This document shows positions 14,584 through 57,646 of a stretch of DNA of 64,000 nucleotides, piece after piece; the stretch's first letter is position 1, and each line of letters begins with the position of its first letter. The stretch spans positions 62,001 through 126,000 of the IMG/VR virus record IMGVR_UViG_3300045135_002615. One strand, written 5' to 3'. The position numbers and the translations under genes were made by a program. Under the pieces are notes generated by a model. The model saw only the letters and a list, made by a program, of their open reading frames with translations, was not told where the DNA came from and did not search any database.

Positions 14584-14958
14584 ATGGGTGCAGGTATCAT
14601 GGTGAGATGCGGAGGTGAGGTTCTAATTCTCAAGAGAGCAAACTACAAAGAGGACAAGTATGCGGGCTATTGGAACTTCCCCGGTGGCACAGCAGATGAA
14701 GGTGAGACCCCATATGAAACCGCAGTCAGGGAGACTAGGGAAGAGATCGGGGTCTCCACCCCATATATCAAGATCGTTGACCATATAGGAGATCGCATCT
14801 ACACGATGTTCATCGGGCACGTCCCTATTAAGTTCAAACCAATCATAGATCATGAGCACACTGATTGGAGGTGGATACCAATCTCAGAAGTTAGTCATAT
14901 CGAGAATTTCCACCCCAAGGATAAGAGGCTCTTTGAGAGACTTAACGTGAGTTTCTGA
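14584..14958 (+). CDS. NUDIX hydrolase
   Basis: Complete Nudix box GGTADEGETPYETAVRETREEIG. Confidence 0.95.
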   Translation: MGAGIMVRCGGEVLILKRANYKEDKYAGYWNFPGGTADEGETPYETAVRETREEIGVSTPYIKIVDHIGDRIYTMFIGHVPIKFKPIIDHEHTDWRWIPISEVSHIENFHPKDKRLFERLNVSF

Positions 14959-15439
14959 GCCTATGCTTAGCGATCTCTCTTGCGTTGTTGTCCATCTCAT
15001 GTGAGGTGGGTCCCCCCTCGGTTGTAAAGGGAAAAGATAATATCAGACCAACTACTGAACCGAGCTGACCTGAGCCAAGAAGGAGACCAATGCTACCTGT
15101 TACAGTGACGAGGATTGCAATAATGGCTATCACCGCTATGGTCGCATTACTTAGTTTAAAGGTTTGTCGTAGCGAGAAATAGAAGTGGTCCCAAAGTTTT
15201 TTAAATGATGATCTCTTGGGTGCCTCCTCTAGGATCTGCATGAACTTCTCATCTTTTCGGAGTTGCTTGATCTGCCTAGCTATATCCTCCTCCCTCGCTC
15301 CTTGAGCGACCTCCACCACCGACCGAGGTATCGAGCTCAGCACTTTAGGTAGCTCCTTCAGAAGGCTGAAAATCGCCTCTTTTTCCATTTGAGCAACCTT
15401 AGCATGGGCGACTCTTTGTATCATTGCTTGTCTATTCAT
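14942..15439 (-). CDS. Membrane protein with leader variant (MNRQAMIQRVAHAKVAQMEKEAIF), 165 aa
   Basis: GGAGG SD at the revised start; long hydrophobic segment IAVIAIIAILVTVTGSIGLLLG...VVGLILSF. Confidence 0.75.
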   Translation of the reverse strand: MNRQAMIQRVAHAKVAQMEKEAIFSLLKELPKVLSSIPRSVVEVAQGAREEDIARQIKQLRKDEKFMQILEEAPKRSSFKKLWDHFYFSLRQTFKLSNATIAVIAIIAILVTVTGSIGLLLGSGQLGSVVGLILSFPFTTEGGPTSHEMDNNAREIAKHRLRNSR

Positions 15440-15499
15440 CTTGCACCTCCATATAGGACATATACATGGCAAGAGACATATAAAAAAAAATCTACTAAA

Positions 15500-16582
15500 T
15501 TACCATGCTTGGAAGTGAAGCCCTATAGACCATGTGTTAGACCCATCTGACCCATACACCCAACCCACACCCGGAGCTACATTCAATGCCTTCCCTGCAA
15601 ACATCATATGATAAGTCCCCATCACCCCTAAGTAGGGAACGCCCACCGTCAAGATCACGTTAGCCCCTAGTCGATACTTGCCTTCAACCGCATTGACCAA
15701 TGAAGCACCTACACTCAAACCGAACCCTGTGCTCTGATAGGTTGAACCGATTAGTAAAGAAGGCTCAAAGAGCTTAAGACCCCTCCCCGTTTGACTAGGG
15801 TCTACCTTTGGAGTGTAAGTGAATGACCCTTGTAAGTTGGGGTCTCCCTCTAACAGGGTCTGCTCTGCAATCGAGACAAAGCCTTTTTCAGGGTCTACAT
15901 AGCCTGCATAGATGTGAACCCCTTGATTTTGAGCAGCTCCTGAGCCGAGCTTGTTAGGGTCTTCACTATATCCTATCGTGACGACCTTGAAGGCAAGGTT
16001 GAGGTCAAGAGCATACTGACCCTCCCATAGATTAGGGGTCGAAAAGCGAGCAAGGGGTGAGCCATTGACCTTGTAAGGGCTCTCCCAACTAAACTCAAAA
16101 GGCTCACAACGCTCAGGATGATCCGCACACCTGACTTGGTCTTGCTTAGATACACCTTTCCATGTGCTTGGAGGAGGGGGCGTCTTAGCTCTATCTACTT
16201 TGCCTCCGATGCGGCGGATGCCTTCATTAAGGCGAGTCTCCATGTGTGTGAAGCGTACACCAATACTGTCTATACGAGCATTTGTCTGATCAAGGAAGCG
16301 GTCAAGCTCTCTGCGTGTACTCTCATCAAGACCTTCCATAACTTCACGGGTACGATTGATCACCTCAGCTTGAGTGACCATGCGGCTCTCGACCTGGTTG
16401 AGTTGAGTATTGAGCTGAGAGATGACGCGGGCTTGCTCAGATAGCTTACCCTCAAGCTGCTCCTTGATCGTTTGGTTGAGGCTTTGAGACTTGTAGTTTG
16501 TCCACCATGTGGAGCCGAGGTTAAGGATGACTAGAGTGGCGAGGGCATAAAGACCTCGATTAAAAAGCATAGTGGGTTCCAT
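15500..16582 (-). CDS. Envelope protein: N-terminal TM, coiled coil, C-terminal amphipathic beta-strands
   Basis: Hydrophobic residues about 9-28; heptad-rich 30-125; alternating-pattern strands ending WSIGLHFQAW. Confidence 0.65.
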   Translation of the reverse strand: MEPTMLFNRGLYALATLVILNLGSTWWTNYKSQSLNQTIKEQLEGKLSEQARVISQLNTQLNQVESRMVTQAEVINRTREVMEGLDESTRRELDRFLDQTNARIDSIGVRFTHMETRLNEGIRRIGGKVDRAKTPPPPSTWKGVSKQDQVRCADHPERCEPFEFSWESPYKVNGSPLARFSTPNLWEGQYALDLNLAFKVVTIGYSEDPNKLGSGAAQNQGVHIYAGYVDPEKGFVSIAEQTLLEGDPNLQGSFTYTPKVDPSQTGRGLKLFEPSLLIGSTYQSTGFGLSVGASLVNAVEGKYRLGANVILTVGVPYLGVMGTYHMMFAGKALNVAPGVGWVYGSDGSNTWSIGLHFQAW

Positions 16583-16681
16583 GATTTATCTCCATCTTAG
16601 GGTTGGTCTACTGAGATTACCATAGCCTTGAAGGGTAGGCTTACTATAAAGTAGACAACTATCATTTAACGGAGCACAGAC

Positions 16682-19285
16682 ATGAACTTCTTAGACGCAT
16701 TGACACAAGTCAATCGACCCAACATCAGCCCTAAGCCTTGGATGGCAGAGTGCGAGCTTATTTTCGGAACAAGAGACAACCTCGACAAGTGCATTGACGA
16801 GTGTATCAACTCTCCTACAGGCTTCTATGGTCTTGACACCGAGACTACAGGTCTTGACACGCGAGTATTCAACGGAAAGACAAGAGACACCATCGTGGGC
16901 ATCTGTCTCGCCCCGACCAAAGACAAGGGCTACTACTTCCCTGTCGCCCATAAAGAGGGAGTAGAGCACAACATTCCATGGAGGATCATGGGTCCTGCCC
17001 TTGAGCGTCTGTTTGATGTGTCTGTTAAGGCTATCCCTATCTTCCACAACAGCTCTTTTGATATGGAGGTGTTGGAGTTCAACGGATTCACCAAGCAACG
17101 TCTAGGTGAGAAGCGTTGGGACTCTCAGGCAGGGTGGCACGACACCTATATCTTGCAGTATCTCCTCAACCCTCGTGAGAAGGGCGGGCGTGGTCTTAAG
17201 CACTTGACGAACGTCCACCTCAAGAGGGAGATGATCGAGCTCTATGAGTTGTTTGGCATGGATAAGAAGGGTAGTAACTTGAACTACTCTCAACTAGACC
17301 CCTCATGGGAGCCTTGTGTGTGGTACGCCGCGAGTGATGCCATGTGTACGCTTGGGCTCTTTGAGATCCTCTATGCCGAGTATACAAGTAAGCCTGAGCA
17401 TACCAACTTCATCTATGCGTTGGAGAAGTCCTGTGCTTCCGCTACGCGGTGGATGCACCGCAACAGGGTCTACATTGATAGGGACACCGCCCTGAGCTAT
17501 GCCCAATCGGGTCAGAAGCTGTGGTTTGACTCTCTCGTAGAGGTCTACGAGGGTGCGTCAGAGATCCTTGGGCGTAATATTATGCCCAACTATGTACGCA
17601 TCTTGAAGGGAGAGCTGAAGGGTATGAACCGCTTCAATCCCGATGAGGTCGAGGGTATGAGCTACAAGGTACGCCTCGATGAAGCTCGTAAAGAGGCATT
17701 ACGCTTACACCCTGACCCTACAGAGGTGCTCACTAAGTCTGTCCCATACATTGACCGAGATGCAGGTACGGAGAGTGTTGAGTTCCCCTTAGTCTATGAC
17801 ATCATGTCACCACAGCAGTTCGGTCTGCTTTTGAGAGAGTTGGGTGTACCTGGCTTGAAGGCATCTGAGAAGTCGGGTCAAGTGGTCACGTCTAAAGATG
17901 TGATTGAAGTCGTGATCAAAGAGGCGAGTGAGACTTTCCCCTTCATGAAGAAGGTTAAGACCTTCCGTGAGCTAGGTAAGGCTATGGGTCAATACCTCAT
18001 CCCCTTCGTGGAGGATGTGGGTCCCGATGGGACACTCAAGCCCAAGTTTGATCAGTTCGCTGCCGATACGGGTCGCTTCTCATGTAAGACAAACAGCAAG
18101 CCTTGGAAGGTGCTTGATGGTGGCTGTCGTGTACCCTTTCAAGGTATTCCTGCGACCTATGATCCTAACAAGCCCGAAGCTATCGCCAAGATGCGTAAGT
18201 GTGTAGCTGTTAGAAACCCTGACTATTGGCTCGCGGCGATTGACTACGCAGGTGTAGAGTTAAGGCTCGTCACCAACTTGAGCGGTGAACCTCTATGGGA
18301 AGATGCCTTCTTCCGTTGTTCGGAGTGTGGTAAGGATTACCCTAAAGACATTCAAGAGGATGGATTTGCGGAAGCCCCTCCTGCGATCTGCTCATGTGGG
18401 TCGGATAAGATCGGTGATCTCCACACGATCACGGCGGTAGCCTTTTATGGAGAGGGAGCTAAGAAGCAAGACGATTGGAAGAAGCTCCGTGGTAACGGCA
18501 AGTCCTGTAACTTTGCTCTCTCTTATGGAGGTACGGGCAAGGCGGTACAGAGGTCTATTAAGGGTTGCTCAGCAGAGGAGGGTGAGGAGAAGTACAAGCT
18601 CTTTACCAAGACGTACAAGACGTTGACTGCGTGGTGGGCTCAGCAACACGCTTTTGGGCGTAAGCATGGTTTTGTAAAGACGGGCTTAGGTAGGGTTCAG
18701 CCCCTCCCTGACATCAACAACAAGAAGGAGTTTGGTCTCCGTTCTAAAGATGAGCGTAAGGCAGTTAATGGACCTGTACAGGGTACGAGTGCCGACATTA
18801 CTAAGCTCGCCATGAGTCTGATCTACAAAGCGGTCAAGGAGCGTGGTTGGGAAAACAAGCTCATGATGATCTTGACGGTACACGATGAGATTGTGTTTGA
18901 GATTCACAAGGACATCTTGAAGGAGGGTATTGAGCTACTCTGTGAGTTGATGACCCGTAATGAGGCGGTCAAGCGTATGAAGTGGCCTGTACCTTTGCTC
19001 GTAGACGTAGAGCTAGGTAAGGATTGGACAGTCCCTTACGACCTCAAAGAGATCAGAGAGGGCGAGGGGGATCCTGAGCTAGTCAAAATCTTTGGTGGTG
19101 TAAAGCCTTCGGAGAAGCCTGTTGAGGAGGAAGCTCCTAAGCAGGAGAAGCCGAAGGTGGACACACTTGAGATTGACGAGTTGACTGCGGATAGTGCGGT
19201 CAAGGTGGCGATGTGGGTTAGGGAGAGAGAGGGAGAGTGGGACGTGATCTATAGTGGGAGATCAGTCAAGGCACTACTCGTTTAA
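16682..19285 (+). CDS. polA: DNA polymerase family A with 3'-5' exonuclease (Phe762 type)
   Basis: ExoI DTETTG, ExoII HNSSFD, ExoIII YAASDA; motif A DYAGVELR; motif B RGNGKSCNFALSYG; motif C TVHDEIVFE. Confidence 0.97.
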   Translation: MNFLDALTQVNRPNISPKPWMAECELIFGTRDNLDKCIDECINSPTGFYGLDTETTGLDTRVFNGKTRDTIVGICLAPTKDKGYYFPVAHKEGVEHNIPWRIMGPALERLFDVSVKAIPIFHNSSFDMEVLEFNGFTKQRLGEKRWDSQAGWHDTYILQYLLNPREKGGRGLKHLTNVHLKREMIELYELFGMDKKGSNLNYSQLDPSWEPCVWYAASDAMCTLGLFEILYAEYTSKPEHTNFIYALEKSCASATRWMHRNRVYIDRDTALSYAQSGQKLWFDSLVEVYEGASEILGRNIMPNYVRILKGELKGMNRFNPDEVEGMSYKVRLDEARKEALRLHPDPTEVLTKSVPYIDRDAGTESVEFPLVYDIMSPQQFGLLLRELGVPGLKASEKSGQVVTSKDVIEVVIKEASETFPFMKKVKTFRELGKAMGQYLIPFVEDVGPDGTLKPKFDQFAADTGRFSCKTNSKPWKVLDGGCRVPFQGIPATYDPNKPEAIAKMRKCVAVRNPDYWLAAIDYAGVELRLVTNLSGEPLWEDAFFRCSECGKDYPKDIQEDGFAEAPPAICSCGSDKIGDLHTITAVAFYGEGAKKQDDWKKLRGNGKSCNFALSYGGTGKAVQRSIKGCSAEEGEEKYKLFTKTYKTLTAWWAQQHAFGRKHGFVKTGLGRVQPLPDINNKKEFGLRSKDERKAVNGPVQGTSADITKLAMSLIYKAVKERGWENKLMMILTVHDEIVFEIHKDILKEGIELLCELMTRNEAVKRMKWPVPLLVDVELGKDWTVPYDLKEIREGEGDPELVKIFGGVKPSEKPVEEEAPKQEKPKVDTLEIDELTADSAVKVAMWVREREGEWDVIYSGRSVKALLV

Positions 19286-19662
19286 ATGAAAATCCCATCC
19301 AACCTCCTGACGTTGGTTTTGTTTTGGAGTTCACGTTTTAACTCACGAGCAACTCTCTTAGGATTTGAGGCATAAGTGAGTTGCAACCAATCAACCCTGA
19401 TTGAAAATGAAGGGTCATTCCTACCAATGACTTCAACTTGCATATCAGCTTCTCTCCCCTGACTGTCAGTCAGCTCATATTTGACGTAGTAACCTCCGTG
19501 GGAATAAGAGTTCTTAAGGTTTATCTGCTCAACCTTATAACCTTCGTCCTCAAACACCTTCTCAATATCCTTTAAATATCTTAGGGGGTGTGCTTTTTTC
19601 TCAAGACGAGCGATACGGGATTCGAGGTGGGCGATTTTCTGACTGGCTGTTAGGTGTCTCAT
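19282..19662 (-). CDS. Leader-bearing protein B (126 aa)
   Basis: Starts MRHLTASQKIAHLESRIARLEKKA; AAAGGAGG SD 6 nt upstream. Confidence 0.8.
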   Translation of the reverse strand: MRHLTASQKIAHLESRIARLEKKAHPLRYLKDIEKVFEDEGYKVEQINLKNSYSHGGYYVKYELTDSQGREADMQVEVIGRNDPSFSIRVDWLQLTYASNPKRVARELKRELQNKTNVRRLDGIFI

Positions 19663-20259: not shown

Positions 20260-20260
20260 T

Positions 20261-20953: not shown

Positions 20954-20966
20954 ATAGTTACTTTAT
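20954..20966 (+). promoter_or_regulatory. Late-promoter motif ATA-GTTAC-TTTAT
   Basis: 41 nt upstream of ATG 21007, just after a terminator. Confidence 0.65.
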
Positions 20967-21006
20967 ATCTCCACCTCAACCAACACAACCCATAAAGGAG
21001 ATGTCC

Positions 21007-21891
21007 ATGAGACACCTAACAGCTAGTCAGAAAATCGCTCAGCTTGAAAACCGTATCGCCCACCTAGAGAAGCAAGCCTTCCTAGAAGGCATCCAACAAA
21101 AAGTCTCAGCTTGGATTGAAGCCAAGCTACCCTATAAGAGAGAAGTGAAGAAGGCAGTTCTTTCTGAGTACTCTATCAGGGACATGAAGAGTGCTGAAAA
21201 AGCAGCTAAATATGTGGTGAGGGATCTTAAAGATCCTCATCACATGACCGCCCTCAGCATGATTGTGAAGTCCGAGTCTACGTTCAAGGGTCGAGTGGAG
21301 ATGGCTCTCAATATTAAGAATCACCCTGAGATGTTTGAGGGGCGTACAGCGTCAGCGTTTGCTGTTGCCGCGTTGAGCGTAACAGCGTTACTTGTGGGTG
21401 TTGTTTGGACCTCGATTAAGCAGGTGTTCCGCCTTGCGTCACACAATAAGCAAGGCGGAATTCCCGTGATCGTGGGTGTCATCATCTCCATTTTGGGAGG
21501 TGTCGCTTTTCATGAGCTTCTTCTGACTCCTGAGAAAAAAACAAAAGAGATTGGGCACGCCATCTCAAGGGGTTTGATCGGTGAGCTCCCCGGAATTAAA
21601 TCAATAGAGAAGGTCTCAGAGAACATGGATGAGGTGGTCATAAAACTTGAGATTGCAGACACAGCAATGAAATACCCTACCGACATAGCTACTTTTTATC
21701 TCACCTTTGATACAACAAAGGATTATGTTTTCGTTGAAAACAGCTACATCAACGGGATAGCAGGGACATATGAAAATGTTTTAAAGAAGCTAGAGTCTCC
21801 AAGAGTTGAGGCTGAGTTGAGAGAAAAAATTAAGATTTGGGAAGATGACGATATTTTTCTTGGGCGAGATGACGATGACATGTCCATATAG
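21007..21891 (+). CDS. Leader-bearing membrane protein C (294 aa, two hydrophobic segments)
   Basis: Starts MRHLTASQKIAQLENRIAHLEKQA; hydrophobic stretches follow RTAS and KQGG. Confidence 0.8.
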   Translation: MRHLTASQKIAQLENRIAHLEKQAFLEGIQQKVSAWIEAKLPYKREVKKAVLSEYSIRDMKSAEKAAKYVVRDLKDPHHMTALSMIVKSESTFKGRVEMALNIKNHPEMFEGRTASAFAVAALSVTALLVGVVWTSIKQVFRLASHNKQGGIPVIVGVIISILGGVAFHELLLTPEKKTKEIGHAISRGLIGELPGIKSIEKVSENMDEVVIKLEIADTAMKYPTDIATFYLTFDTTKDYVFVENSYINGIAGTYENVLKKLESPRVEAELREKIKIWEDDDIFLGRDDDDMSI

Positions 21892-22961: not shown

Positions 22962-24422
22962 ATGGCAAGAACTGACTCCGAGAAAAGAGACATCTACAAG
23001 AAGTGGCATGAGCTGATCAACATGAGTGAAACGGCTCTTAAGTCATGGGCAGAAGATGATGACAGGCTTCTTGCGTCTATCAATAGGCAAGAGGCAAAGT
23101 CTGAAGGGGGTATCCAATCGGGCTATGATTCCTTCCATCGCATAAAAAGGCGTAAAAAAAAGCCTTTTAAGGAATGGTCGGACTCGGATTTCGATAATGC
23201 TAATCAAGAGATAGGCTTCAACTCACGGATGCTAGGAGGCACCCCTGGGAAACCTGTGTCCAATTCAGGGCGATCTAAATGGGAGATCAGTCTTAGGAAT
23301 TGGGGACACGATCCTTCGTTGAAGTCAAGCCCCGCACATAATAAATGGAAGTCATGGAAGAAGAAGCAAGAGGAAACCAACATGAAGAAGTCACACCAAG
23401 TCCGCGTCCTGAAGAGGGCGATTATAGCCACGAGAAACCGCCCTGACCTAGCCCCACAGAGGGAGGAGTACATCCGCCTTTTGAAAGCTCATAATAGCAG
23501 GGTAGCTTCGGGTGACCCTAATAAAGAGTTAGAGAAGCCAGCTAAGAAGCTTGGTTTGTCTAGGAAAGATATGTACGAGGCATGGCTTCCACTTTTAAAA
23601 AAAGTATCGGGTCTTATCAAGCCTGAGTATCAGGTTCAGATTTCCAAGTTCATTTCGAGTTATGGTCTTTTGGGATTCTTCAATGGGCTCTACAAGGACA
23701 CCATGAAGGGTACAATCAAGCCCTCAAATCCCGTTGAAAAATTCCTTGCCTCGATCTTCAAAGGCTTGAGTATCTCAAAGACCGCCGAGATGACCATCCG
23801 TGTCCTCCAAGCGGAGTCCTTGGATGATATTGCCGAGGTCGGTAGAGCACAAGGTCGGGATATGTTGGGAGAGTGGGGTCTAGGAGACGCTAAACTCAAA
23901 AAGCGTATGTATGAGAATAAAGTGGGACGTAACGTCACTTGGGAGGAGTTCGCTGAACAAGTCGAAGATAAAAGGTTGTACACCATGTTGGTGAAGTATC
24001 TAACCTATATTGAGGATTCTAAAATCTTTGGGGTTAAGCTCTTGTTCACCATTGTCAAAGGTGCAGGTGTTGCTTGGTTATTAGGAGGCACTCTCGCAGG
24101 GATTACTTTCGGCGTGGTTGCATTCCTTAAGTTCATTTTTGCTTTGGCGGTGTGCTTCGGTTGGCGTAATGCAGCTCAGTTTCTTCGTAAGACAGGGATT
24201 ATGCTCACCGCACTCGCCCCTTCAGTGCTCATAGACCTTGGGAGGGTCTTAGGACTCCCGTTTGATATATTCCATGGCATTGTAAACAAAGTGAGTCAAG
24301 CCACAGATGCCGTCGTTAACTTCTTCTCGAAGAAGGCGGTACAAGAAATCCGTATGCTACTTAGAGAGGACATGGACTTCCGCAGGGAGTTCTTGATCAC
24401 TCAAAAACGCAGACACATCTAA
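22962..24422 (+). CDS. DUF3140-like domain fused to a helical/membrane protein
   Basis: INMS..AL.SW ... SKWEISLRNWGHDP; hydrophobic C-terminal segments; possible internal start at 23382. Confidence 0.7.
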   Translation: MARTDSEKRDIYKKWHELINMSETALKSWAEDDDRLLASINRQEAKSEGGIQSGYDSFHRIKRRKKKPFKEWSDSDFDNANQEIGFNSRMLGGTPGKPVSNSGRSKWEISLRNWGHDPSLKSSPAHNKWKSWKKKQEETNMKKSHQVRVLKRAIIATRNRPDLAPQREEYIRLLKAHNSRVASGDPNKELEKPAKKLGLSRKDMYEAWLPLLKKVSGLIKPEYQVQISKFISSYGLLGFFNGLYKDTMKGTIKPSNPVEKFLASIFKGLSISKTAEMTIRVLQAESLDDIAEVGRAQGRDMLGEWGLGDAKLKKRMYENKVGRNVTWEEFAEQVEDKRLYTMLVKYLTYIEDSKIFGVKLLFTIVKGAGVAWLLGGTLAGITFGVVAFLKFIFALAVCFGWRNAAQFLRKTGIMLTALAPSVLIDLGRVLGLPFDIFHGIVNKVSQATDAVVNFFSKKAVQEIRMLLREDMDFRREFLITQKRRHI

Positions 24423-24478: not shown

Positions 24479-25879
24479 ATGGATAAGAAAGCATGTGTCA
24501 TAGGGGTCACCCATATCAATGGGAAGAAGTACATCTTTAAAAACAGGGACAGGAACTATATCCCTGAGATTAAAGTCTATCATGTGCTGAGCGAGAATGG
24601 TACAGAGATACTCTACTTCAAAGACGAGATATCAGGGTGGGTTGAAGGGATCAATGAGCACGGCATCGTAGTAGCTAATGCCGCCCTCATGGTCTTGGAA
24701 GATGAAAAGGCGGGGCTTAAGAAGGGTAAGAAGGTTAGATTCTCTAAAGATGCTCACCGTATGATCTATGCACTCGACACCAACTCATTGATGGAAGCCC
24801 TACATAGGGTCACCCACTTCAAAACAGGAGTCAAGGGTCATACAACAGTGTCCAACGCTGAACACACCTACGTCATCGAGCGTACAAGTAAACATGATCC
24901 AAAGGTCGAGCTCGTCAATGAACCCCACTTCGTAAGAACCAATCATGGCGTCCACTACCCAGATGCAGGTTATCAAGTAGGTGCTGATAAAGAGTCCTCA
25001 CACACCCGTTATGAGACCGCTATGTCGGTTATGGAGTCAAGGAATAGAAGCCCTTACGACATCGTCAAGAAGTTCTTTAACAAGAGATTGAAAGATGTAC
25101 CCAATCCCAATAATGTAGTCCGTAAGACGGACAATATGTTCACCTCTAATCAGTTCATATTTGAACCCGCTAAGAGGAGGATGAATATGATATTGATCGA
25201 GGACGATTGCGTATTCCTCGGATACGAAAAGCACTTCTCTAAACCCGCTAAGTGCTCCTTCTCTGTGCGTAAAGTCAAGCCTGGTAAAGACGGGAAAGCC
25301 ATGCTTGAAAAGATTGAAGCAAAGCCCATCCAAGTAACACTCCCACCCCCTAATGAGAACGTACTTAGAGTCTTTGCGTATGGCTCGCTCATGTATGAGC
25401 CTGAGCTACCTGATCTAATCTGCGGTCAGAAGGTCTGTCACTTGAACGGTATGAGGCGTGTCTTTAATATTTACTCTCCATCAAGGAAGCATTCAGTCTT
25501 GGGTACTTGCCCTGGCGGTGCCATGCAGGGACTACTCCTTGAGTACCCTATCGAGAACGCTGAAGAAGTCATCAAGGCTCTTGATAAGCGTGAAGGGTTT
25601 AAGGAAGGTGACTCAAACAGCCTATACTTGAGAGAAGTTCGTAGAGCTTACTCCACCGAACACCCTCAAGGTGTTCCTTGTATCGTATACATCACTAATG
25701 AAGAACATGACTCATATGTTGGTCCTCGTGACGATCTGATTCAAGAGACAGTAGAATCTGAAGACCTGCAAGGATACCTAAGAGGTTGTTCAAGGTCGAT
25801 GACAAGCCATGGTGTTGAGGACAAGTACCTTGATCGAATCATACTCAAACTGAAGGAAGACCATAAGGTAAGGATATGA
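24479..25879 (+). CDS. Cys-type Ntn-hydrolase (C45/AAT-like) fused to a ChaC/GGCT-like domain
   Basis: A-C6-VIG...KNRD...EGINEHG...RTNH; C-terminal RVFAYGSLMY...LDKREG. Confidence 0.8.
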   Translation: MDKKACVIGVTHINGKKYIFKNRDRNYIPEIKVYHVLSENGTEILYFKDEISGWVEGINEHGIVVANAALMVLEDEKAGLKKGKKVRFSKDAHRMIYALDTNSLMEALHRVTHFKTGVKGHTTVSNAEHTYVIERTSKHDPKVELVNEPHFVRTNHGVHYPDAGYQVGADKESSHTRYETAMSVMESRNRSPYDIVKKFFNKRLKDVPNPNNVVRKTDNMFTSNQFIFEPAKRRMNMILIEDDCVFLGYEKHFSKPAKCSFSVRKVKPGKDGKAMLEKIEAKPIQVTLPPPNENVLRVFAYGSLMYEPELPDLICGQKVCHLNGMRRVFNIYSPSRKHSVLGTCPGGAMQGLLLEYPIENAEEVIKALDKREGFKEGDSNSLYLREVRRAYSTEHPQGVPCIVYITNEEHDSYVGPRDDLIQETVESEDLQGYLRGCSRSMTSHGVEDKYLDRIILKLKEDHKVRI

Positions 25880-31428: not shown

Positions 31429-31621
31429 TGGGGTCTACCTTCCTGTTGGCTTGTTGCTCTTTGAGCTGTGTCTGAACTCTCTCAAGGGCATGTATCTGAG
31501 ACTGAACTTGACGAGCTTCCTTCTCATAGTAGTCCTTGAGAGCAATCAAGTTGCTCACAAAGTCCCCTAGCTGAGTACCCTCAAGGTTTGGTCTCTCTGA
31601 CTCACTCTTCCAATCACTCAT
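31421..31621 (-). CDS. Small coiled-coil protein
   Basis: Overlaps neighbours at both ends; heptad pattern. Confidence 0.6.
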   Translation of the reverse strand: MSDWKSESERPNLEGTQLGDFVSNLIALKDYYEKEARQVQSQIHALERVQTQLKEQQANRKVDPNG

Positions 31622-34600
31622 ATGATGTCCTCCAACGCTGTTAGGTCAGGGTTTTGATAGTCGATCCTATCCATGCGAGGTAAAGTACCTGTCACTCGGT
31701 TCGTCCTCGTATTAATCCATGCATACCTCTTACTCCTCATACCCATAGAAGAGATACCATTCCCTATGAGCGTAACCATACCCTCAAAGAGTGTATGCCC
31801 TTGAGCCTCAAGCTGAGGGTCTTCAACAAGTAGCCTACGATCCGTTAAAGACAGCATTGTGTCCGTGTAAGGGTACGGAGGCTCATGCGGCGTCAAAACC
31901 CCAAAAATCAGGTCATTAGATGGGTGTGTGGGGTCGTTCTCACCTACAAGGTAAATAGAGTCTGTCTGCTCATACGCAGCCCATGTCAAAGGTAGAGGCA
32001 CAAGTTGATTAAACAGCCTTACCCTCTCAGACCATGACAATACTCTCTCCCTGAAAAACAACACAACCTCCGCTAAGTTTCGATCAAGCAAGTCTCTCCT
32101 CTTAAGGATGCGATAAGAGAAGGGCTCTATGCTGTCTGAGCTTGTAGTGTATGTCCCATTGTCGATAGGAGAAGTCACCCTCAAAGGGTTCGAGGTGTCC
32201 CCATCTACAGAAGGTAGGAATATCTCATGTGGGTTTGAACTACCTGAGATAAACTCAACCGTCAAAGATGACCCGTCAACACTAATGACCCTATAGGATC
32301 CCCTGTTGTCATCTAAGGTGTTCGGCTGACCCACACCTAATGGTCCATCGCCTTGTGCAGGAGCACCCCTCTCTAATGGGGCACCCTCAAGAGCTCCTTG
32401 AGGGTCTATCACGAGATAATAATCTGAAGGTGTACCCGTGATTAGCTCAGAGAAGTCTACACTAGTGTCTTCAAGAGTATTCTCCGTAGGCACACGAGCT
32501 GTGGAACTATAGATGAGATCAAAACCATGCTCAAGGAACTCGTTGAAGCTCTGCTCTTGGGGGATCAAGTGTGTTCTTGTAGTCACCTTGAAAGATACCA
32601 TGTCACCATTAGGGTCACCCGATAATGAGATGCCTTTAGCTGAACCTGGTGTAGCCTCAACAATCTTCATCTTGAAGACCTCATCACTTGAGCTGTCGTA
32701 CATAGTGATGTAGTCACCAACCTTCAAGGCTTCATCAAAGTCACCCACTTGAGTGTCCTTGCCCCCTAGTGCCTCTACACCAAAGACATCAACCTTCTTA
32801 GAGGTGAGTGTATAGACGCCATCTGTGAAACTAAGATGGTCAACCAAACCTACCTTCTGCTCATAGAGGTTTTTGAGACCAAGTAGTGAGTTCAACATCT
32901 CAAGCATGATGCGAGAGAACCTCCTGAGCCTACGCACCTTGATCGTACTCACCTCTGTGAATGTCCAAGCAGGTAAGTTACCTAACCCAACTTCATCAGC
33001 AAGTGATCTTACTTGAGAAGTCCCATCATTAAACACCTTTGGTGTCGTACCCCTATAGTCTCTCATTAAGCGAGGGAATGCTCGATCAAGATGGATCGCT
33101 GCTTCCGCCGTGATGGTCAGAGTAAAGCTATCATTAGGCGTTAAGAACCCTTGCCCATAGGTGTTCCCTTGAGGCGTGTCTTCTATCGTAGGGAAGATAG
33201 ACTCCCATGAACCGCCTACTAAATTAGATGGGAGTAAGAGAGCTCTCATGATGCCCTCCTCATCCCTCTCAATATAACTCTCATCTACCGTGACGGATAC
33301 GGACAAACCACCCGCTAAGGTGAGGTCAATGGTTAATGGACTAGCTAATGAAGTTGGGACTTCATAAGGGAGCAAGCCTGTAGCCAAGAAGTTAAAAGGA
33401 ACCTTGTGGATGCCACAAACGACTTGACCACCTGACCCAATAACACTGTTCATCTGTTGGTAGGTGAGCTCCTCTACCTGGTTAGAGTCTACGTTGCCAT
33501 AAGTGGGGTTCTCAGTGCCATTGGCGGATGAGAAGGTGAACGTCATCGAACCGCCATTGATCGAGTCATACTTCAAGCGGATGTAAGACCGATAGAACAC
33601 TTCATCGAAGCTATTGTTCTGTGTAGACGCAGGCTGAGTCAGGTAGTTGTCATTCAAGAGGATGATGGCTTCCATCAAGCCCGACCCATTGTAGTAAAGA
33701 CTCAAGTCGCTGCTGTCTGTCACAAGCGTACCTGTACCATCACCATTATCGAGTACCTCCACTACAGTGGGGAACACTACAGGCAAGATATCGCTAGAAC
33801 CAATCTGCTCTGTGTATGTGGCACTTAACGCTGAAGGGGTTATCCTCTTGACTCGATGAACACCCGCGTTGTGACCTCGCTCAATATAGACCAAGTCACC
33901 CTCTTCAACATTAGCTAATGAACCTTCAAAAGACACAAGGTTCGTCAACTCAGCCGGGGCGGAGTCTGTTGTACCTGTTGGGTCAATCCTGCCATATTCA
34001 CCTGAACCAATGAAGATGACCTCTCCATCTCGAACCTCAGCACCTACAAACAAAGACATAGGATCGTTGGTTCGCTCAATGTCAAAGAGACTCCTTACCC
34101 TCAAGGTGTTGGCGTCAATCACATCCCATGCCTCACCTAGTCGAATATGAGAGTATCCGAAACGACTAAAGGCGTTAGCATAAGACTCAATAAGCTGTGT
34201 TCCTATGCCCCCATACTGCCATACGTTCATTAGTGACCCGTAGACATAGAATAGTGGTGTCACATCTAATGGGGCGACACCACCTCCCGCTGCCAATAAC
34301 ACAGAGGGGTCGGTGTCTGATTGTATCCATGTTGTGAAATCAGCATCTGCATCATAGAAGCTCAACCTGTCCGAGAGGACATACGAGTTAGTATTCAACC
34401 CGAACCTCATGTCGATGCGATAGTTCAAGAAGAAGTCAATAGAGAGCGTCCTCGTGTTTACCCCAATATCCGCAGTCACATCGAGGTCGATGAGGTCTGT
34501 CCATAACGTGTTAGTGATCCATGTCTCATAACCATTAAAAGGCCACTGAGGTTCCTCAGCTAAGGTCAACACATTAGGGATAGGTTGTTGGAGTACGCCA

Positions 34601-40347: not shown

Positions 40348-40392
40348 ATCTCTAGCTCCACTCAGATGGTCAGACCATAGACTACCACCCAC

Positions 40393-41697: not shown

Positions 41698-42954
41698 TTA
41701 GTATCTTCTTCTTAGGCGAGAATCCTGACGGCTGAACCCTTTAGGGAGGGTAGCACCTGTGAGATCAGCTCCACTGAGGTCTGCTCCACTGAGGCCAGCG
41801 TGACTGAGGCCAGCGTGACTGAGGTCTGCTCCACTGATTTTAGCGTATTCAAGGTCAGCGTGACTGAGGTTAGCATCATTGAGTTTAGCCCCATTGAGTT
41901 CAGCACCATTGAGTTTAGCCCCATTGAGTTCAGCCCCATCGAGTTTAGCCCCTTTGAGGTTAGCTTCACTGAGGTTAGCTTCAATGAGCTGAGCATCATA
42001 GAGTTTAGCTTTAGTGAGGTTAGCACCATTGAGATAAGCTCCTGTGAGATCAGCATAACTGAGGTCAGCCCCACTGAGGTCAGCTCCTGCGAGTTTAGCT
42101 TTAGTGAGGTTAGACCCCATGAGGTAAGCCTTAGTGAGCTTAGCCTTAGTGAGGTTCGCCCCTGTGAGTTTAAACCTAACGAGGTTAGTTCCACTGAGGT
42201 CAGCGTGACTGAGGTTCGCCCCATTGAGTTCAGCCTCATAGAGTTTAGCCCCTGTGAGTTTAGCCCCTGTGAGATCAGCATCTGTGAGATCAGCCCCCTC
42301 AAGGTTGGCTCCACTGAGGTCAGCCTTACTGAGATCTGCATCTGTGAGGTCAGCCTTTCTGAGATCAGCACCCTTGAGGTTAGCGTTATTGAGCTCAGCA
42401 TCTGTGAGATCAGCTTCAGTGAGGTTAGCCCCACTGAGATCAGCCTTACTGAGCTTAGCTCCTATTAGGTCAGCCCCTCTGAGATCAGCATCTGTGAGAT
42501 CAGCCTTACTGAGATCAGCGTTATTGAGATAAGCATCTGTGAGATCAGCCCCTCTGAGATCAGCACCCTTGAGGTTAGCGTTATTGAGCTCAGCGACAGT
42601 GAGATCTGCATCAGTGAGATCTGCATCAGTGAGGTCAGCCTTTGTGAGGTTAGCCCCTCTGAGGTTAGCCCCTCTGAGCTTAGCCCCAATGAGCTTAGCC
42701 CCAATGAGATCAGCCTTACTGAGCTCAGCCTCACTGAGATCAGTCCAACTGAGATCAACACCACTGAGATCAGTCCAACTGAGGTCAAGACCACTGAGGT
42801 CTTGACCTGAGAAGTCTTTCTCCCCCTTAGCGAGTGCCTCCACTAGGGACTCCCTAGTGTGCTTAAGATTGCCCTTTAGGGAGGCTTGCTTCTCTAGATG
42901 AGAGATACGGTTTTCGATTTGAGCGATTTTTTGACTGGTTGTTAAGTGTCTCAT
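41698..42954 (-). CDS. Pentapeptide-repeat protein carrying the conserved leader (protein D)
   Basis: About 70 A(D/N/K/E)Lxx repeats after MRHLTTSQKIAQIENRISHLEKQA. Confidence 0.95.
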   Translation of the reverse strand: MRHLTTSQKIAQIENRISHLEKQASLKGNLKHTRESLVEALAKGEKDFSGQDLSGLDLSWTDLSGVDLSWTDLSEAELSKADLIGAKLIGAKLRGANLRGANLTKADLTDADLTDADLTVAELNNANLKGADLRGADLTDAYLNNADLSKADLTDADLRGADLIGAKLSKADLSGANLTEADLTDAELNNANLKGADLRKADLTDADLSKADLSGANLEGADLTDADLTGAKLTGAKLYEAELNGANLSHADLSGTNLVRFKLTGANLTKAKLTKAYLMGSNLTKAKLAGADLSGADLSYADLTGAYLNGANLTKAKLYDAQLIEANLSEANLKGAKLDGAELNGAKLNGAELNGAKLNDANLSHADLEYAKISGADLSHAGLSHAGLSGADLSGADLTGATLPKGFSRQDSRLRRRY

Positions 42955-52989: not shown

Positions 52990-52990
52990 G

Positions 52991-53128: not shown

Positions 53129-53181
53129 TGTGACCCCGAATTTGGAACCATGTTTATAAAGAGGGTTGAAAGGACACACAC

Positions 53182-53502
53182 ATGACACTATCAAGAATAC
53201 ACAACGGAAGAAGAGAGTGGACACCACTAGCCAAACTGAGACTTAAGAGAGAGGGGGGGAGTATCTCTCCTAGCTTTGGTCAAGAGTTATTAGTTGAGCT
53301 AGAGTCCTGTAGCTTTGAAAATTATGGTCAAGCGGCATTTATGAAAGACGACTCAGGAGTATGGCTTAAGTATCATGGACCTAGTAATGGGGTGATACTC
53401 TATTGTCGCAACACACAGAAGTCAATGACATACAAAGAGATGGGTGACCTCATTAACTTATGGGGAGACATCCGTACCTTGTGGAGAGAGAGTAAAGGTT
53501 AA
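53182..53502 (+). CDS. Hypothetical protein
   Basis: AAAGGA SD; isolated ORF. Confidence 0.6.
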   Translation: MTLSRIHNGRREWTPLAKLRLKREGGSISPSFGQELLVELESCSFENYGQAAFMKDDSGVWLKYHGPSNGVILYCRNTQKSMTYKEMGDLINLWGDIRTLWRESKG

Positions 53503-53670
53503 GCCTCTCAGGGAGGGGGGGTCTTATATATGAGCCGTTTCCGTGTTCAAGGGTGAGGTGGGCTTGCCTCGTATATTATTTGGGTTTGGTTTTTTGAGGG
53601 TTGATTTCAAACCCCATATCAGTTGTCGTTCTATAATCGTGTTAGGAACACACACATAAAGGAGAGCCAA

Positions 53671-54321: not shown

Positions 54322-54326
54322 GTTCA

Positions 54327-54339
54327 ATAAAGCCTTTAT
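54327..54339 (+). promoter_or_regulatory. Late-promoter motif ATA-AAGCC-TTTAT
   Basis: 47 nt upstream of ATG 54386. Confidence 0.65.
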
Positions 54340-54385
54340 TAGTGTGTATGGAGCATGAAGTCCCGCATAGAGAGGATCATGTGAC

Positions 54386-55810
54386 ATGGATACACTAGTT
54401 AAGCTTGCCACCTTAGAAGAGAGATTTGGGTTAGAGAGCAAGGGGGGTTCTTTAGAAGCCAGGATAGCGAGTCTTGAGAGTTTTGCCGTAACTAAGTTAG
54501 CGGGGCGTGTTGCGATAGAGGTGGGGAAGAAGGTTCCGAGTGAGGTGCAAGGTGTTTTGGGGAAGGGTTTAAGGGATGAGTTTGGTGTGAGTAGCTTAGA
54601 TGGTTTAGCATCTAATCTAGAAGCAATCCGCATTGGCTTACAGGACTCTAAGAACAAAGAGGTAGCGGACTATGTGAGGAAGCAGAGTAATACTTTAAGG
54701 GGTCAGGTAGAGCTATTACTTGAGTTGAAGAGTTCGGACAGGGTGGGCAGTTTTAAGAACTATTTCTTTGGTTTCTCAATACCTTTAGTGATCATGCTTT
54801 TGGTCATGTCGTTGTTTTCTCAGATGACGTTCTTCCAGTTGCTTTTAAGTTTTGGGGGTCACATTGTAGAGAACTTTTTTGTGATCGTAGTGGGTGGGGT
54901 ATGTGTGGTAAAGGTAGCTCAGTTCTTAATGTGGGTCTCGGACAAGATCGAAAAGTTTGAAAAGGCTGTCTTTGGATTTTGGAAGCCAAAACCAAAGAAG
55001 AAGAGGAGGAGGAGGAGGGCTACCAAAGAGGCGAGGGCGTTAGAGACCTTGAACAAGGTGGTGGAGTTCTTACCGTTGGTGAGCCGTTTGAAGGGAGCGG
55101 GTAAGGAGCTTTTACGTTTAGTGGGTAGTTCATTTCAGGACTTGGTGAGCACGTTTGAGCTAATGGTAAGGAAGGACAAGTGGAAGATACTTGAGGCGTT
55201 GAAGAAGAACTTTGACTCTCAGATGTCGAATGCTTTTCAGACATTTACGTCAGTGAAGGAGCCTCCGAAGTTGAAGGAGATAAACTTTGAGAAGCTTTTA
55301 GACTCGGTGTATGAGCATAAGGGGGAGAAGTTCAAGTTGAGGGAGTTATTGGAGGCGGATTCGATAGTGGGTCAGGGGGCATATACGACGTACAATAGTT
55401 GGGTAATGGAGTACGGGTATATCTTAGATCATGCTTTGGGTCGTCCTGCGAAGATGACGGGTAAGCAAGAGAGGGATTTATTAAAGAAGGGTGCGAGTGC
55501 TTTGAAGAGAGCATCGAACACATTCTACAGGTTCTTAGGTTTATGGTTGAAGGCAACTTCGCAGTCGGCGTTGGTGACTTCATTGTGGGTATCCGTAACG
55601 GCGATGTCATTAGCTTATGGTGGGAAGGTCATATTAAGGAAGCTGGTAGACATGTTTAACTCAAAGGTGACGGAGGAGATTAAGGAAGACAAGGGTGGTC
55701 CGATGTCTGAGTTATTCACGCCATCAAGAGTAGCGAGTAGGGGAGGTCATACGTTAGTGTTAGTGAATGAGTATCTTGAGTGTTTGAACTACATAGAGGG
55801 TAGGGTCTAG
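54386..55810 (+). CDS. Membrane protein with doubled RhxxhE leader variant
   Basis: KLATLEERFG...KGGSLEARIASLE; hydrophobic segments; late motif at 54327-54339. Confidence 0.75.
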   Translation: MDTLVKLATLEERFGLESKGGSLEARIASLESFAVTKLAGRVAIEVGKKVPSEVQGVLGKGLRDEFGVSSLDGLASNLEAIRIGLQDSKNKEVADYVRKQSNTLRGQVELLLELKSSDRVGSFKNYFFGFSIPLVIMLLVMSLFSQMTFFQLLLSFGGHIVENFFVIVVGGVCVVKVAQFLMWVSDKIEKFEKAVFGFWKPKPKKKRRRRRATKEARALETLNKVVEFLPLVSRLKGAGKELLRLVGSSFQDLVSTFELMVRKDKWKILEALKKNFDSQMSNAFQTFTSVKEPPKLKEINFEKLLDSVYEHKGEKFKLRELLEADSIVGQGAYTTYNSWVMEYGYILDHALGRPAKMTGKQERDLLKKGASALKRASNTFYRFLGLWLKATSQSALVTSLWVSVTAMSLAYGGKVILRKLVDMFNSKVTEEIKEDKGGPMSELFTPSRVASRGGHTLVLVNEYLECLNYIEGRV

Positions 55811-55812
55811 GT

Positions 55813-56880
55813 TTATCTTTTCTTCTTGTTTGAGGGCTTCTTCTTGGTCGAGGGCTTCTTTGGAGTATTCTTTTTGAGCTCTTTAGGGATAGCTTTAACT
55901 ACGGGGTCTTGTGTTCCGAGTTGGGTTTCAGCTTGGACTACCGCACCATCTACGAGCATTTGTGGTCCAGAGAGCATCTTGTATAGCCCTTTGCCGATCA
56001 TATGCAAAAACTTAAGGACCATCTTAAGAGGTGTTTCCACGAAGAGCTTACCGGGTAGTCGTTGAGTTTTGAACACACCCCATGAGATAAGCATGAGGAC
56101 ATAGTAAATGACGACAGCAACACCTAAGAATTTCAGGGTTGTGAAAAAGGAGATATGACCTCCGAGCCAACCAAGAAGTGTCATGATTGCGGAACCTATA
56201 GCGTTAATAGCAGTGAACAAACCTCCCCACGCCAAACCTACCGCCTTAGCCATTCCAATATATGCCGCATTGGAAGTGATTGATGTGGGTAGTATGAAGT
56301 TAAAGAGCCACCCTGCTCCCACACCAATGTAATAAACAATTTGTGTGGCAATCCATCCGGACCACCCAAGTGCCGAAACCATATATGCCCATAGGATGTT
56401 AGAGGACTTCTCCATAGAGCCTGTCTTCATAAACTCAGGCATCACCCCTGTCTTATTGACCCACAGTGATTTATCATCGCGGACGTACCATAGTAGAACA
56501 ACGGTCATCGTTTCGGGGGCGACATCTACAATCTTCGCCATCTCTTCAATTTTCTTATTCTTGAAGGCTACTTGGAACGAACCTACGATGTTGCTCGCCT
56601 CTTCGGGTGTTTTTACTTTTGAGAGCCTATCACTCAACATCTTCTGTATAGGGTCGTCTCGATCAACCTTAGCTTTGGTCATTTGAGAGAGGCTCATTTT
56701 ATGAGAAGAGAAGAGGTCTTGGATGCCTTTGAGGGCGGTCCCCGAAATACCTTTTCTTATCTTTAGTGCTTCATTAACAACGACAGCCTTAGTGACCTTC
56801 TCCTTAAGATCATCAACTATGCCTGCTCGCTTTTGCATCTTAGCGAGATGTAGACTTGCGACACGTTTTGAGTTAGCCAT
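55813..56880 (-). CDS. Multi-TM protein with leader variant MANSKRVASLHLAKMQKRAG
   Basis: GAGGAG SD; long hydrophobic region after KTGS. Confidence 0.75.
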   Translation of the reverse strand: MANSKRVASLHLAKMQKRAGIVDDLKEKVTKAVVVNEALKIRKGISGTALKGIQDLFSSHKMSLSQMTKAKVDRDDPIQKMLSDRLSKVKTPEEASNIVGSFQVAFKNKKIEEMAKIVDVAPETMTVVLLWYVRDDKSLWVNKTGVMPEFMKTGSMEKSSNILWAYMVSALGWSGWIATQIVYYIGVGAGWLFNFILPTSITSNAAYIGMAKAVGLAWGGLFTAINAIGSAIMTLLGWLGGHISFFTTLKFLGVAVVIYYVLMLISWGVFKTQRLPGKLFVETPLKMVLKFLHMIGKGLYKMLSGPQMLVDGAVVQAETQLGTQDPVVKAIPKELKKNTPKKPSTKKKPSNKKKR

Positions 56881-56920
56881 GTTCTTACTCCTCTAGATTA
56901 TGTATGACTACAGGGGTTTA

Positions 56921-56933
56921 ATAAACAATCTAT
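56921..56933. promoter_or_regulatory. Bidirectional late-promoter motif ATAAACAATCTAT
   Basis: Matches the consensus on both strands; 41 nt from ATG 56880(-) and 36 nt from ATG 56969(+). Confidence 0.65.
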
Positions 56934-56968
56934 AGCTCTCACCTACCTATACGCATGGAGGTAAGAAC

Positions 56969-57646
56969 ATGGAACATAGAATCGCATCATTAGAGAGAAG
57001 ACTTGGGGTCACACCCTCAAGAGGTGCAAGCCTTAATGTGAGACTTGCAAACCTTGAGGAGTTAGCCACTGATAAGGCATCTAATCAGATAGAGCGTATC
57101 GCTCAGAAGAAGTTGCCCACTGAGGCTAAGAGAGTGGCTCAAATCGTTTTGGGTAAAGAGATGGGCATTACAAGCTATGCGGGCTTCAAATCGAAGGCAG
57201 CACAGATTTACAAAGAGGTGCAGAAAGCTGAGACAAAGAAGATTGGGCAGAGGATCATCAGGGCACACCCGAACGATTTAAAGGCTCAGTTCCGTATGGC
57301 GATTGGTCTCAATCTCTCAGAGGGCAAGCAGGCGGGCTTTGGGAGCAACTTTGTCTTAGGGGTTACAGTTACAGCGGTGCTGTTGTATCTAGTAATGGTT
57401 GCCATTGCGGACACGATTACTGCCTTTGGTCTAATATGGCTTCTCCCTAATATTCTTGGAGAGATGTCACTCTTACTCCTTGCTGGAGGCTTGGTTTTTG
57501 GGGTGATGGGTTCCGTGTTCTCATGGCTCATCAACTTGAAAAAAAGCCGTCAAGCTTCGCTCAAGTTGATGGGTCAAGAAGTCGTGACGAGGAAGAAGTC
57601 TCTAGGTAAAGAGCTTTTAGAGACTTTATTCGATCTACTCTCATAA
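56969..57646 (+). CDS. Membrane protein, N-terminus paralogous to 54386..55810
   Basis: RIASLERRLG..SRGASL.VRLANLE; hydrophobic block between KQAG and RQAS. Confidence 0.75.
   Translation: MEHRIASLERRLGVTPSRGASLNVRLANLEELATDKASNQIERIAQKKLPTEAKRVAQIVLGKEMGITSYAGFKSKAAQIYKEVQKAETKKIGQRIIRAHPNDLKAQFRMAIGLNLSEGKQAGFGSNFVLGVTVTAVLLYLVMVAIADTITAFGLIWLLPNILGEMSLLLLAGGLVFGVMGSVFSWLINLKKSRQASLKLMGQEVVTRKKSLGKELLETLFDLLS

Follow-up and report, generated by a model that had tools for sequence, protein, structure and literature searches.

Do six genes scattered between positions 14942 and 57646 of a giant-phage contig encode one family of membrane proteins that are carried in the phage head and ejected with the DNA? 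The genes lie in the window analyzed here, a stretch of 64,000 nucleotides comprising bases 62,001-126,000 of a 296,642-bp viral contig, which is metagenome-derived and classed in IMG/VR as linear and ~95% complete. An earlier note on this DNA had grouped the six (designated here by their lowest coordinates: 14942, 21007, 22962, 54386, 55813, and 56969) as a multigene family of late, head-linked proteins with a common leader, comparable to the ejection proteins of T7 and crAss-type phages. We found that the leader holds, that it is far wider spread than had been claimed, and that copies of it occur in the head module, whereas the multigene family could not be upheld and no homology to T7 or crAss-type ejection proteins was detected. 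As judged from the genes, one N-terminal tag in several versions appears to be common to more than 20 unrelated, presumably late proteins. Five of the six (14942, 21007, 54386, and 56969, and more remotely 55813) seem to belong to this class, which would be defined by the shared tag and not by common descent of the whole proteins.

An N-terminal leader on unrelated proteins

By a regular-expression search followed by a profile search, 19 open reading frames (ORFs) of the genome were found to open with MR(H)LTASQKIAQLExRIAxLEKxA, which may also be written MR(H/Q)LTASQKIAQLExRIAxLEKxA, or with a close form. The leader is an amphipathic peptide of ~25 residues, and all 19 canonical copies are N-terminal. 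Residues I10, R16, L20, and E21 are invariant and L13 and E14 nearly so, and the sequence follows the pattern of a two-heptad zipper with Ile at position a, Leu at d, Glu at e, and Arg or Lys at g. Four of these ORFs (13691, 19282, 21007, and 41698; Table 1) are located in the window. The cargo behind the leader is unrelated from one protein to the next; two proteins consist of pentapeptide repeats, one has a weak match to DUF4258, and the rest have no match. In the seven copies beginning with MRHLTASQ, we counted 152 synonymous and 131 nonsynonymous codon pairs in codons 2-26, against 26 synonymous and 479 nonsynonymous pairs in codons 27-51. This contrast indicates that the leader is of old origin and did not arise as a recent DNA repeat; its conservation far exceeds that of the cargo, and selection has acted on the peptide, not on the DNA. 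The second pentapeptide-repeat protein with a canonical leader is encoded at L007:4873-6492 (+). Because pentapeptide proteins are able to act as DNA mimics, the two leader-bearing examples are candidate tagged anti-host effectors.

The uncultured phage is a phage G-like jumbo myovirus. Genes for a Baseplate_J protein, a sheath initiator, and a family-A DNA polymerase are in the window, and those for a portal (L005:10351-12036), a head-maturation protease, an acidic scaffold-like protein, and a small HK97-type major capsid protein are outside it. Among public phages, capsid-protein identity is highest for the uncultured 485-kb phage LR745208.1 (88%), followed by Tunturiibacter phage Tunturi_5 (47%) and then Bacillus phage G (38%). 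The DNA polymerase is 48% identical to that of LR745208.1, and this contrast with the capsid protein could reflect either a mosaic genome or an exceptionally constrained capsid protein. A blastn search of GenBank phages with 54-58 kb of the window gave no match. The true relatives are three IMG/VR contigs, G001 (177 kb), G002 (316 kb), and G003 (105 kb); for G001 and G002, the pair compared gene by gene, the capsid proteins are 94-96% identical and the portals 81-87%. A further contig, L078, is a close relative (85-98% identical). The T4-type protease, HK97-type protease, and gp23 families are absent from the genome, as are PF03420 and PF07068.

The leader is also present in these relatives. 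While the exact back-translated pattern of MRHLTASQKIA retrieved nothing from IMG/VR, a relaxed, degenerate DNA pattern of the double heptad led to other contigs, each with several ORFs that carry the leader as MRQLTASQKIAQLEHRIAHLEKQA. Among the leader-bearing relatives are the contigs 3300046167_000921, 3300046779_001841, and 3300068287 Ga0611986_0001340. Profile searches gave 10 leader matches in G001, 8 in G002, and 5 in G003, and half of the 10 leader ORFs of G001 have hydrophobic segments. In G002, the leader occurs in six to eight copies of the form MISQKLASLEARIAKLE (pattern MISQK(L/I)ASLEAR(I/L)A(K/R)LE). This form appears to bridge the canonical leader and the KLATLE, RIASLE, and RLANLE copies found in 54386 and 56969.

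The six genes and diverged forms of the leader

All six ORFs are present with good Shine-Dalgarno sites (Table 1), and none of the six proteins has a hydrophobic N-terminus, which agrees with the earlier statement that they lack cleavable signal peptides. The layout ascribed to them was borne out in part: a net-basic N-region followed by hydrophobic segments was found in all six, but 22962 has no leader and the K/R-x-A/G motif occurs at chance level. The N-regions comprise 102 (14942), 114 (21007), 354 (22962), 126 (54386), 180 (55813), and 127 (56969) residues, with net charges of +1 to +20. The hydrophobic segments, with 19-residue Kyte-Doolittle means of 2.25-2.68, number two each in 21007 and 54386, two or three each in 22962 and 56969, and three or four in 55813, while 14942 has a single long stretch or hairpin. 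A K/R-x-A/G motif precedes the first hydrophobic segment in 4 of the 30 transmembrane (TM) proteins of the genome, compared with ~2.6 expected, and the difference is not significant. Its instances are RTAS in 21007, RVGS in 54386, and KQAG in 56969, and at this chance-level frequency we rejected it as a general cleavage mark before the first TM segment (TM1).

The late motif proposed for these genes was recovered at five of them, as TTTAT 46-52 nt upstream (GTTTATT at -46 in the case of 55813; others in Table 1); none was found at 56969. Genome-wide, 72 of the 122 TTTAT occurrences within 120 nt of a start codon are at -50 to -31, and 51 of 336 genes have TTTAT at -53 to -40, where 4 would be expected. 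TTTAT(A/C) is thus sharply placed 31-50 nt upstream of ~50-70 start codons. Since these include baseplate and tail genes, "late" is a reasonable inference. A second enriched upstream class, (T/G)NTATAAG, was observed at other genes, and the two are probably two promoter classes.

In pairwise blastp comparisons, only 54386 and 56969 were similar (E > 0.05 for all other pairs), and the six genes therefore do not make up one gene family. The N-terminal homology of this pair, already noticed in the earlier note, is real and longer than a motif, extending over ~185 residues including the hydrophobic part (blastp E = 7e-14). In an exhaustive phmmer search of 1.84 billion representatives, each was the other's sole relative, and 56969 had none outside its own cluster and 54386; its homolog in L078 is 84% identical. 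A split leader is found in both 56969 and residues 1-190 of 54386, which are paralogous modules. When the six proteins and ~40 neighboring or leader proteins were scanned against Pfam and PHROG, almost nothing was obtained, and a peptide-pattern search of IMG/VR for close relatives of 54386 and 55813 found none. Taken as a group, the six appear to be a mixed set of membrane proteins, presumably late.

The remainder of 54386 seems to have another origin. Beyond residue 190, a poly-basic joint leads to a C-terminal half that is a separate gene in relatives: the L078 homolog (L078:9038-9895 (-)) has 285 amino acids (aa), equals residues 206-474, and is 97% identical, and the G001 counterpart is a separate 277-aa ORF with its own leader. 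54386 is a recent fusion, in which a 56969-like leader-TM module and a gene that stands alone in the relative were joined via a KPKPKKKRRRRR linker.

When scored with the leader hidden Markov model (HMM), 21007 gave an E value of 6e-16, 56969 one of 0.06, and 54386 one of 0.3, and there was no match for 14942, 55813, or 22962. The diverged forms fall into two types, RIASLE/KLATLE and RVA[SA]x[HY][LM]xK. In 21007, the leader is 22/26 identical to that of the G001 ortholog, while the remainder of the protein is 29% identical; both hydrophobic segments have a hydropathy of 2.28, and the RTAS immediately ahead of TM1 is invariant in three orthologs. An AF2 model of 21007 built from 3 sequences is of low confidence (mean pLDDT 52), and its secondary structure alone is usable. 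The protein of 14942 (hydropathy 2.68) starts at the ATG at 15439 and not at an upstream TTG, as the ribosome-binding site supports. Its G001 ortholog (161 aa, E = 1.5e-15) has a canonical leader plus a TM segment, and QRVAHAKVAQMEKEAIF of 14942 is thus regarded as a decayed leader.

The (K/Q)RVA..H..K variant reported for 15439, 56880, and 60446 was found at all three. KRVASLH[LM]A[KR] is kept at the N-terminus of all three homologs of 55813 (86, 86, and 41% identical), so that its start, KRVASLHLAK, is conserved even at the largest distance; glycine-rich TM motifs are conserved in this family as well. An ESM Atlas look-up for 55813 returned a low-confidence model and no usable match. The type RVA[SA]x[HY][LM]xK also starts the 60446 protein, whose N-terminus is conserved in L078, and it is present in an ORF that follows the capsid gene of G001 and in a conserved ORF just before the protease gene. 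Because an orthologous C-terminus of a head-module ORF reads RIAYLEDLRRK in G000 and RRIANRYMK in G002, the RIAxLE and RVA..[HY][LM].K types appear to be interchangeable. With canonical leaders removed, [KR][IVL]A[SAHQ] occurs 21 times in the first 40 residues of proteins genome-wide, compared with 3.5 +/- 1.7 expected from shuffles, a six-fold excess.

These counts bear on whether the six share anything at all. Coiled coils and TM segments may coincide in unrelated ORFans of no common function, with weak motifs having been over-read, and the missing pairwise similarity outside 54386/56969, the chance-level K/R-x-A/G motif, the weak or silent HMM for 54386, 56969, and 14942, and the presence of IAxLExxIAxLE in unrelated coiled coils of other viral contigs all fit such a coincidence. 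We nevertheless consider it improbable, because the G001 ortholog of 14942 has a canonical leader, KRVASLH is invariant at 41% overall identity, the N-terminal [KR][IVL]A[SAHQ] excess is six-fold over shuffles, and the G002 leader (KLASLE...) bridges the canonical and 54386/56969 forms.

Two further observations concern N-terminal motifs of this kind. The KRVA residues of the 55813 and 60446 proteins are encoded by the same 12 nt, AAACGTGTCGCA, at 56866-56877 (-) and 60455-60466 (+), which may be a coincidence or a nucleic-acid-level element. A second N-terminal family, MI(N/D)FL..P..F..R(I/V)AS...HL(A/G)(K/R)IA, opens the proteins of L001:1078-3981 (+), L009:1325-3325 (+), and L009:3884-4993 (+); a hydrophobic segment at the C-terminus is likewise present in the tandem L001 paralogs and in the protein of L009:3884-4993, and G001 has homologs of the L001 genes.

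22962 is unrelated to the other five and appears to combine a DUF3140-like, putative DNA-binding domain with a membrane anchor. Its N-terminal 135 residues are 60-79% identical across more than 100 metagenome proteins (104 homologs in total), and full-length, TM-bearing homologs are encoded on many contigs of 140-375 kb. Elsewhere, this N-domain is fused N- or C-terminally to AAT (peptidase C45), GGACT/ChaC, cupin, SWIM, GNAT, and NIF domains. The match of 22962 itself to PF11338 is below the cut-off (E = 0.014), and some homologs carry PF11338. The AF2 model of the N-domain has a pLDDT of 80-91 and matched DUF3140/"DNA-binding protein" models with a Foldseek probability of 1.0 (TM-by-hit 0.5-0.79). 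The TM half was modeled poorly, and a VIA-align search of PDB gave only generic helical matches with Z < 8; no hit was obtained by tblastn of the protein against GenBank phages. R[VI]AS often directly follows the DUF3140-like module. The adjoining ORF, 24479-25879 (+), is an AAT plus ChaC/GGACT fusion without this module.

Elsewhere in the window, 31618-40392 (-) encodes 2924 aa with a high content of G, V, S, E, and L and is without tandem DNA repeats; this ORF lowers the GC skew to -0.58 across 36-40 kb and likely specifies a giant structural or fibre protein.

Table 1. Positions and main features of the leader-related genes, upstream elements, and head genes. Unprefixed coordinates are those of the window; the genes with the prefix L008 lie in the 10-kb head module of the same 297-kb genome.
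Feature	Coordinates (strand)	Length (aa)	Description
13691	13691..14524 (-)	277	Canonical leader (HMM E 5e-15); no TM; no Pfam match
14942	14942..15439 (-)	165	Degenerate leader MNRQAMIQRVAHAKVAQMEKEAIF; basic helical N-region; hydrophobic ~92-136; charged C-tail
TTTTATA element	15479..15485 (-)		46 nt upstream of the 15439 start
19282	19282..19662 (-)	126	Canonical leader (HMM E 4.6e-16)
CTTTATA element	20961..20967 (+)		46 nt upstream of 21007
21007	21007..21891 (+)	294	Canonical leader 1-26; helical N-region; TM 115-138 and 148-175; beta-rich acidic C-domain
22962	22962..24422 (+)	486	No leader; N-terminal 135-residue DUF3140-like domain; variable linker with RVASGD; 2-3 hydrophobic segments 355-430
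41698	41698..42954 (-)	418	Canonical leader (HMM 2.8e-14); pentapeptide repeats (Pfam Pentapeptide 2e-114)
TTTAT element	54334-54340		
54386	54386..55810 (+)	474	Fusion; residues 1-190, 56969-like module: split leader (KLATLE...RIASLE), helical region, two TM
55813	55813..56880 (-)	355	Starts MANSKRVASLHLAKMQKRAG; basic N-region 165-180 residues; 3-4 hydrophobic segments ~163-272; lysine-rich C-tail
56969	56969..57646 (+)	225	Split leader (HRIASLERRLG...VRLANLEELA); basic helical region; 2-3 TM ~123-188; basic C-tail
60446	60446..60994 (+)	182	Begins MSMIKRVAAAHMKK; RVA..H..K variant; soluble, no TM
Maturation protease	L008:7912-9354		phrog_18299 (5.8e-15)
Acidic scaffold	L008:9369-11036 (+)		Homologs in G001 and G002
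Capsid protein	L008:11796-12674 (+)		phrog_2522; phage G gp27-like (PDB 6wkk_A, E 3.5e-63)

Head-module copies and the destination of tagged proteins

Three leader-profile matches are not N-terminal, and all three fall inside the 10-kb head module. Two are clear and are located at the C-termini of L008:3404-3811 (E ~1e-3) and L008:12962-13216 (E ~1.5e-3); the third, QRLARLERLAS in the scaffold, is weak (E = 0.8). Three [RK][VL]A[SN] sites are conserved in the scaffolds of G000, G001, and G002, KLAAS is found in the N-arm of the capsid protein, and RVASG is found at the N-terminus of the protease. Such a pattern would be expected of a docking element or of a protease site, either one, and a link of the leader to head assembly is indicated by these placements. 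As a lead, RVAS could be an assemblin-like A-S cleavage site. Complex prediction of leader residues 3-47 with scaffold residues 296-400 gave a score of 0.01, which is not evidence either way. The scaffold itself contains repeated (M)DxxADE(L/F)EAD units, an EF-hand-like loop, and a conserved C-terminus, ...ELSKLWxSAPDVSKFFG. The tag thus exists, is under protein-level selection, sits on unrelated cargo, is common to related phages, and has other copies in head genes.

By analogy with known head proteins, we tentatively suggest that the leader is a procapsid-targeting propeptide resembling the T4 capsid-targeting sequence (CTS) and the propeptide of SPN3US gp47, and that the small hairpin membrane proteins are ejected with the DNA. 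The leader would dock the cargo onto the scaffold core during head assembly, and the prohead protease would then trim it, as occurs for the T4 CTS and the SPN3US/phiKZ propeptides. 14942, 21007, 56969, and the N-module of 54386, each with one hydrophobic hairpin, would be carried in the head, leave it together with the DNA, and insert in the host inner membrane in the manner of SPN3US gp47. The multi-pass 55813 protein and the leaderless 22962 protein are more likely to be ordinary inner-membrane proteins of the infected cell. A bolder version, which we regard as rather unlikely in its full extent, is that this single 25-residue zipper leader loads more than 20 interchangeable cargo proteins (membrane-spanning proteins, pentapeptide-repeat DNA mimics, and toxin-like domains) into the heads of a phage G-like jumbo clade. 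An inner-membrane conduit or effectors would in that case be supplied by the virion itself, together with a variable anti-host arsenal, and the leader would act as a portable packaging tag that is much longer than the T4 CTS and differs from it in structure.

Several points weigh against packaging. The leader profile had no match in LR745208.1 (zero copies) or Tunturi_5, and because these phages have capsid proteins 88% and 47% identical to the present one, the leader is not required by this capsid type. Only 1 of the 19 canonical-leader proteins has strong TM segments, which is no enrichment, and the apparent enrichment of 5/24 versus 7/242 (p = 0.002) depends on including the variants that the earlier note had selected for their TM segments. 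As described above, the HMM is weak for 54386 and 56969 and silent for 14942. Neither the T4 cleavage consensus [LI]xE nor the phiKZ/SPN3US consensus [SAG]xE is found in the leader, and therefore no cleavage site can be named. The phage is known as a metagenome contig alone, and the leader proteins are read from genes. Finally, the strength of the hydrophobic segments (2.3-2.7), and their number of three to four in 55813, favor co-translational insertion in the membrane of the producing cell over soluble packaging.

This last point leads to a different fate, in which the proteins would never be packaged but would be retained in the infected cell's inner membrane, where the leader would act on the cytoplasmic side as a coiled-coil docking helix. 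They might tether procapsids or other leader proteins, as in T4, or might serve superinfection exclusion or membrane remodeling. Though itself doubtful, retention in the membrane is nearly as likely as ejection. Besides the strong and sometimes multiple hydrophobic segments, the basic N-regions and tails are consistent with a cytoplasm-in topology, the heptads (a = I, d = L, e = E, g = R/K) make a self-complementary parallel zipper, the glycine-rich TM motifs of the 55813 family are typical of integral membrane proteins, and the T4 prohead is membrane-bound until cleavage (PMC5694885). However, retention leaves unexplained why the same strictly N-terminal tag is present on ~17 soluble, fast-evolving proteins; PHROG and Pfam reveal no homology to known exclusion or assembly-anchor proteins, and SPN3US gp47 illustrates that a TM helix is compatible with packaging.

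A role in lysis, as holins, antiholins, or membrane disruptors, comes to mind for 14942 especially, whose protein is small, with a hydrophobic hairpin and a charged C-tail, and whose neighbor 15500-16582 (-) has weak Rz-like spanin matches (phrog_739, 6e-5). We judge this very improbable. The only murein hydrolases detected, SLT (genome position 231,872) and Amidase_2 (236,190), are more than 100 kb off and have small TM ORFs of their own, and G001 and G002 both lack a homolog of the spanin-like gene, whereas the 14942 ortholog is kept in G001. Furthermore, cytoplasmic N-domains of 100-350 residues are atypical of holins, and the other five proteins are too large. The 360-aa product of the neighbor has a TM anchor at its N-terminus, then the coiled coil with the weak spanin matches, a proline-rich linker, and a beta-rich C-domain of ~200 residues that ends in FQAW, resembling the C-terminal signal of outer-membrane proteins. 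Possibly, this protein is a spanin in one piece, with a beta-barrel and not a lipoprotein partner providing the connection to the outer membrane.

Significance and comparison with known systems

The principle of a CTS or propeptide is already known. In the papers searched, we found no description of the present tag, of its length or zipper character, of its occurrence in 19 or more genes, or of its presence on membrane-spanning proteins in phages of the phage G-like lineage, and a 2025 multi-omics paper on phage G does not mention propeptides. If the leader serves as a packaging tag, T4 would no longer have the only well-defined capsid-targeting signal; the second would come from giant phages of an uncultured lineage, and its cargo would be unusually numerous and variable. 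The proteins injected by these phages could then be predicted from sequence by a simple rule, and the leader would be a candidate portable tag with which foreign proteins might be loaded into large capsids. The membrane-spanning cargo would also bear on how giant myoviruses pass several hundred kb of DNA and tens of megadaltons of protein through the inner membrane. Retention of the proteins in the cell membrane would instead make the tag an indication of head assembly anchored to the membrane, which to our knowledge has been described in detail for T4 only.

In T4, a short conserved N-terminal CTS sends internal proteins into the scaffold core, and gp21 removes it (PMC5694885). Like the CTS of IPI-III and Alt, the leader is a short conserved N-terminal peptide on unrelated, fast-evolving late proteins; the phage likewise encodes a prohead protease and a separate scaffold, and the tag is kept while the cargo differs between related phages. 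However, the leader is a two-heptad coiled coil of 25 residues compared with ~10 for the CTS, it lacks [LI]xE, and the two have no sequence similarity. The capsid, scaffold, and protease are also phage G-like and not T4-like, and the present system is known from its genes alone.

SPN3US offers a closer parallel in size. Propeptides of ~110-130 residues are removed from its head proteins, the diverged paralogs gp53 and gp54 have identical N-termini at 34% overall identity, and gp47, an inferred ejection protein, has a protease-cleaved propeptide directly followed by a predicted TM helix (PMC5694885). SPN3US and phiKZ are, like the present phage, giant myoviruses, and they have many internal head proteins; the propeptide length is close to the 102-127 residues of the N-regions in four of the six proteins, the TM helix right after the gp47 cleavage site is comparable to the hairpin after the N-region, and an N-terminus kept despite overall divergence is seen in both cases. 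Nevertheless, there is no homology, the AXE cleavage motif is not in the leader, and here up to three to four hydrophobic segments occur and one tag is distributed over at least 19 scattered genes.

T7 gp14/15/16, P22 gp7/16/20, and the crAss cargo proteins resemble the tagged proteins only in their proposed role, being head-carried and acting on the envelope after ejection. None of the six proteins has a PHROG match at E < 0.01 or a Pfam match above the cut-off, so the likeness drawn earlier is not backed by homology, and the T7, P22, and crAss proteins are few, conserved, and without a shared leader. The cargo-loading peptides of encapsulins are similar in that a short terminal peptide loads diverse cargo into a shell of the HK97 fold, and the capsid protein of this phage is likewise a small HK97-type protein without a delta domain. 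Encapsulin tags, however, are mostly C-terminal, extended, GSL-type peptides that bind the shell, whereas the tag described here is an N-terminal helix accompanied by a scaffold.

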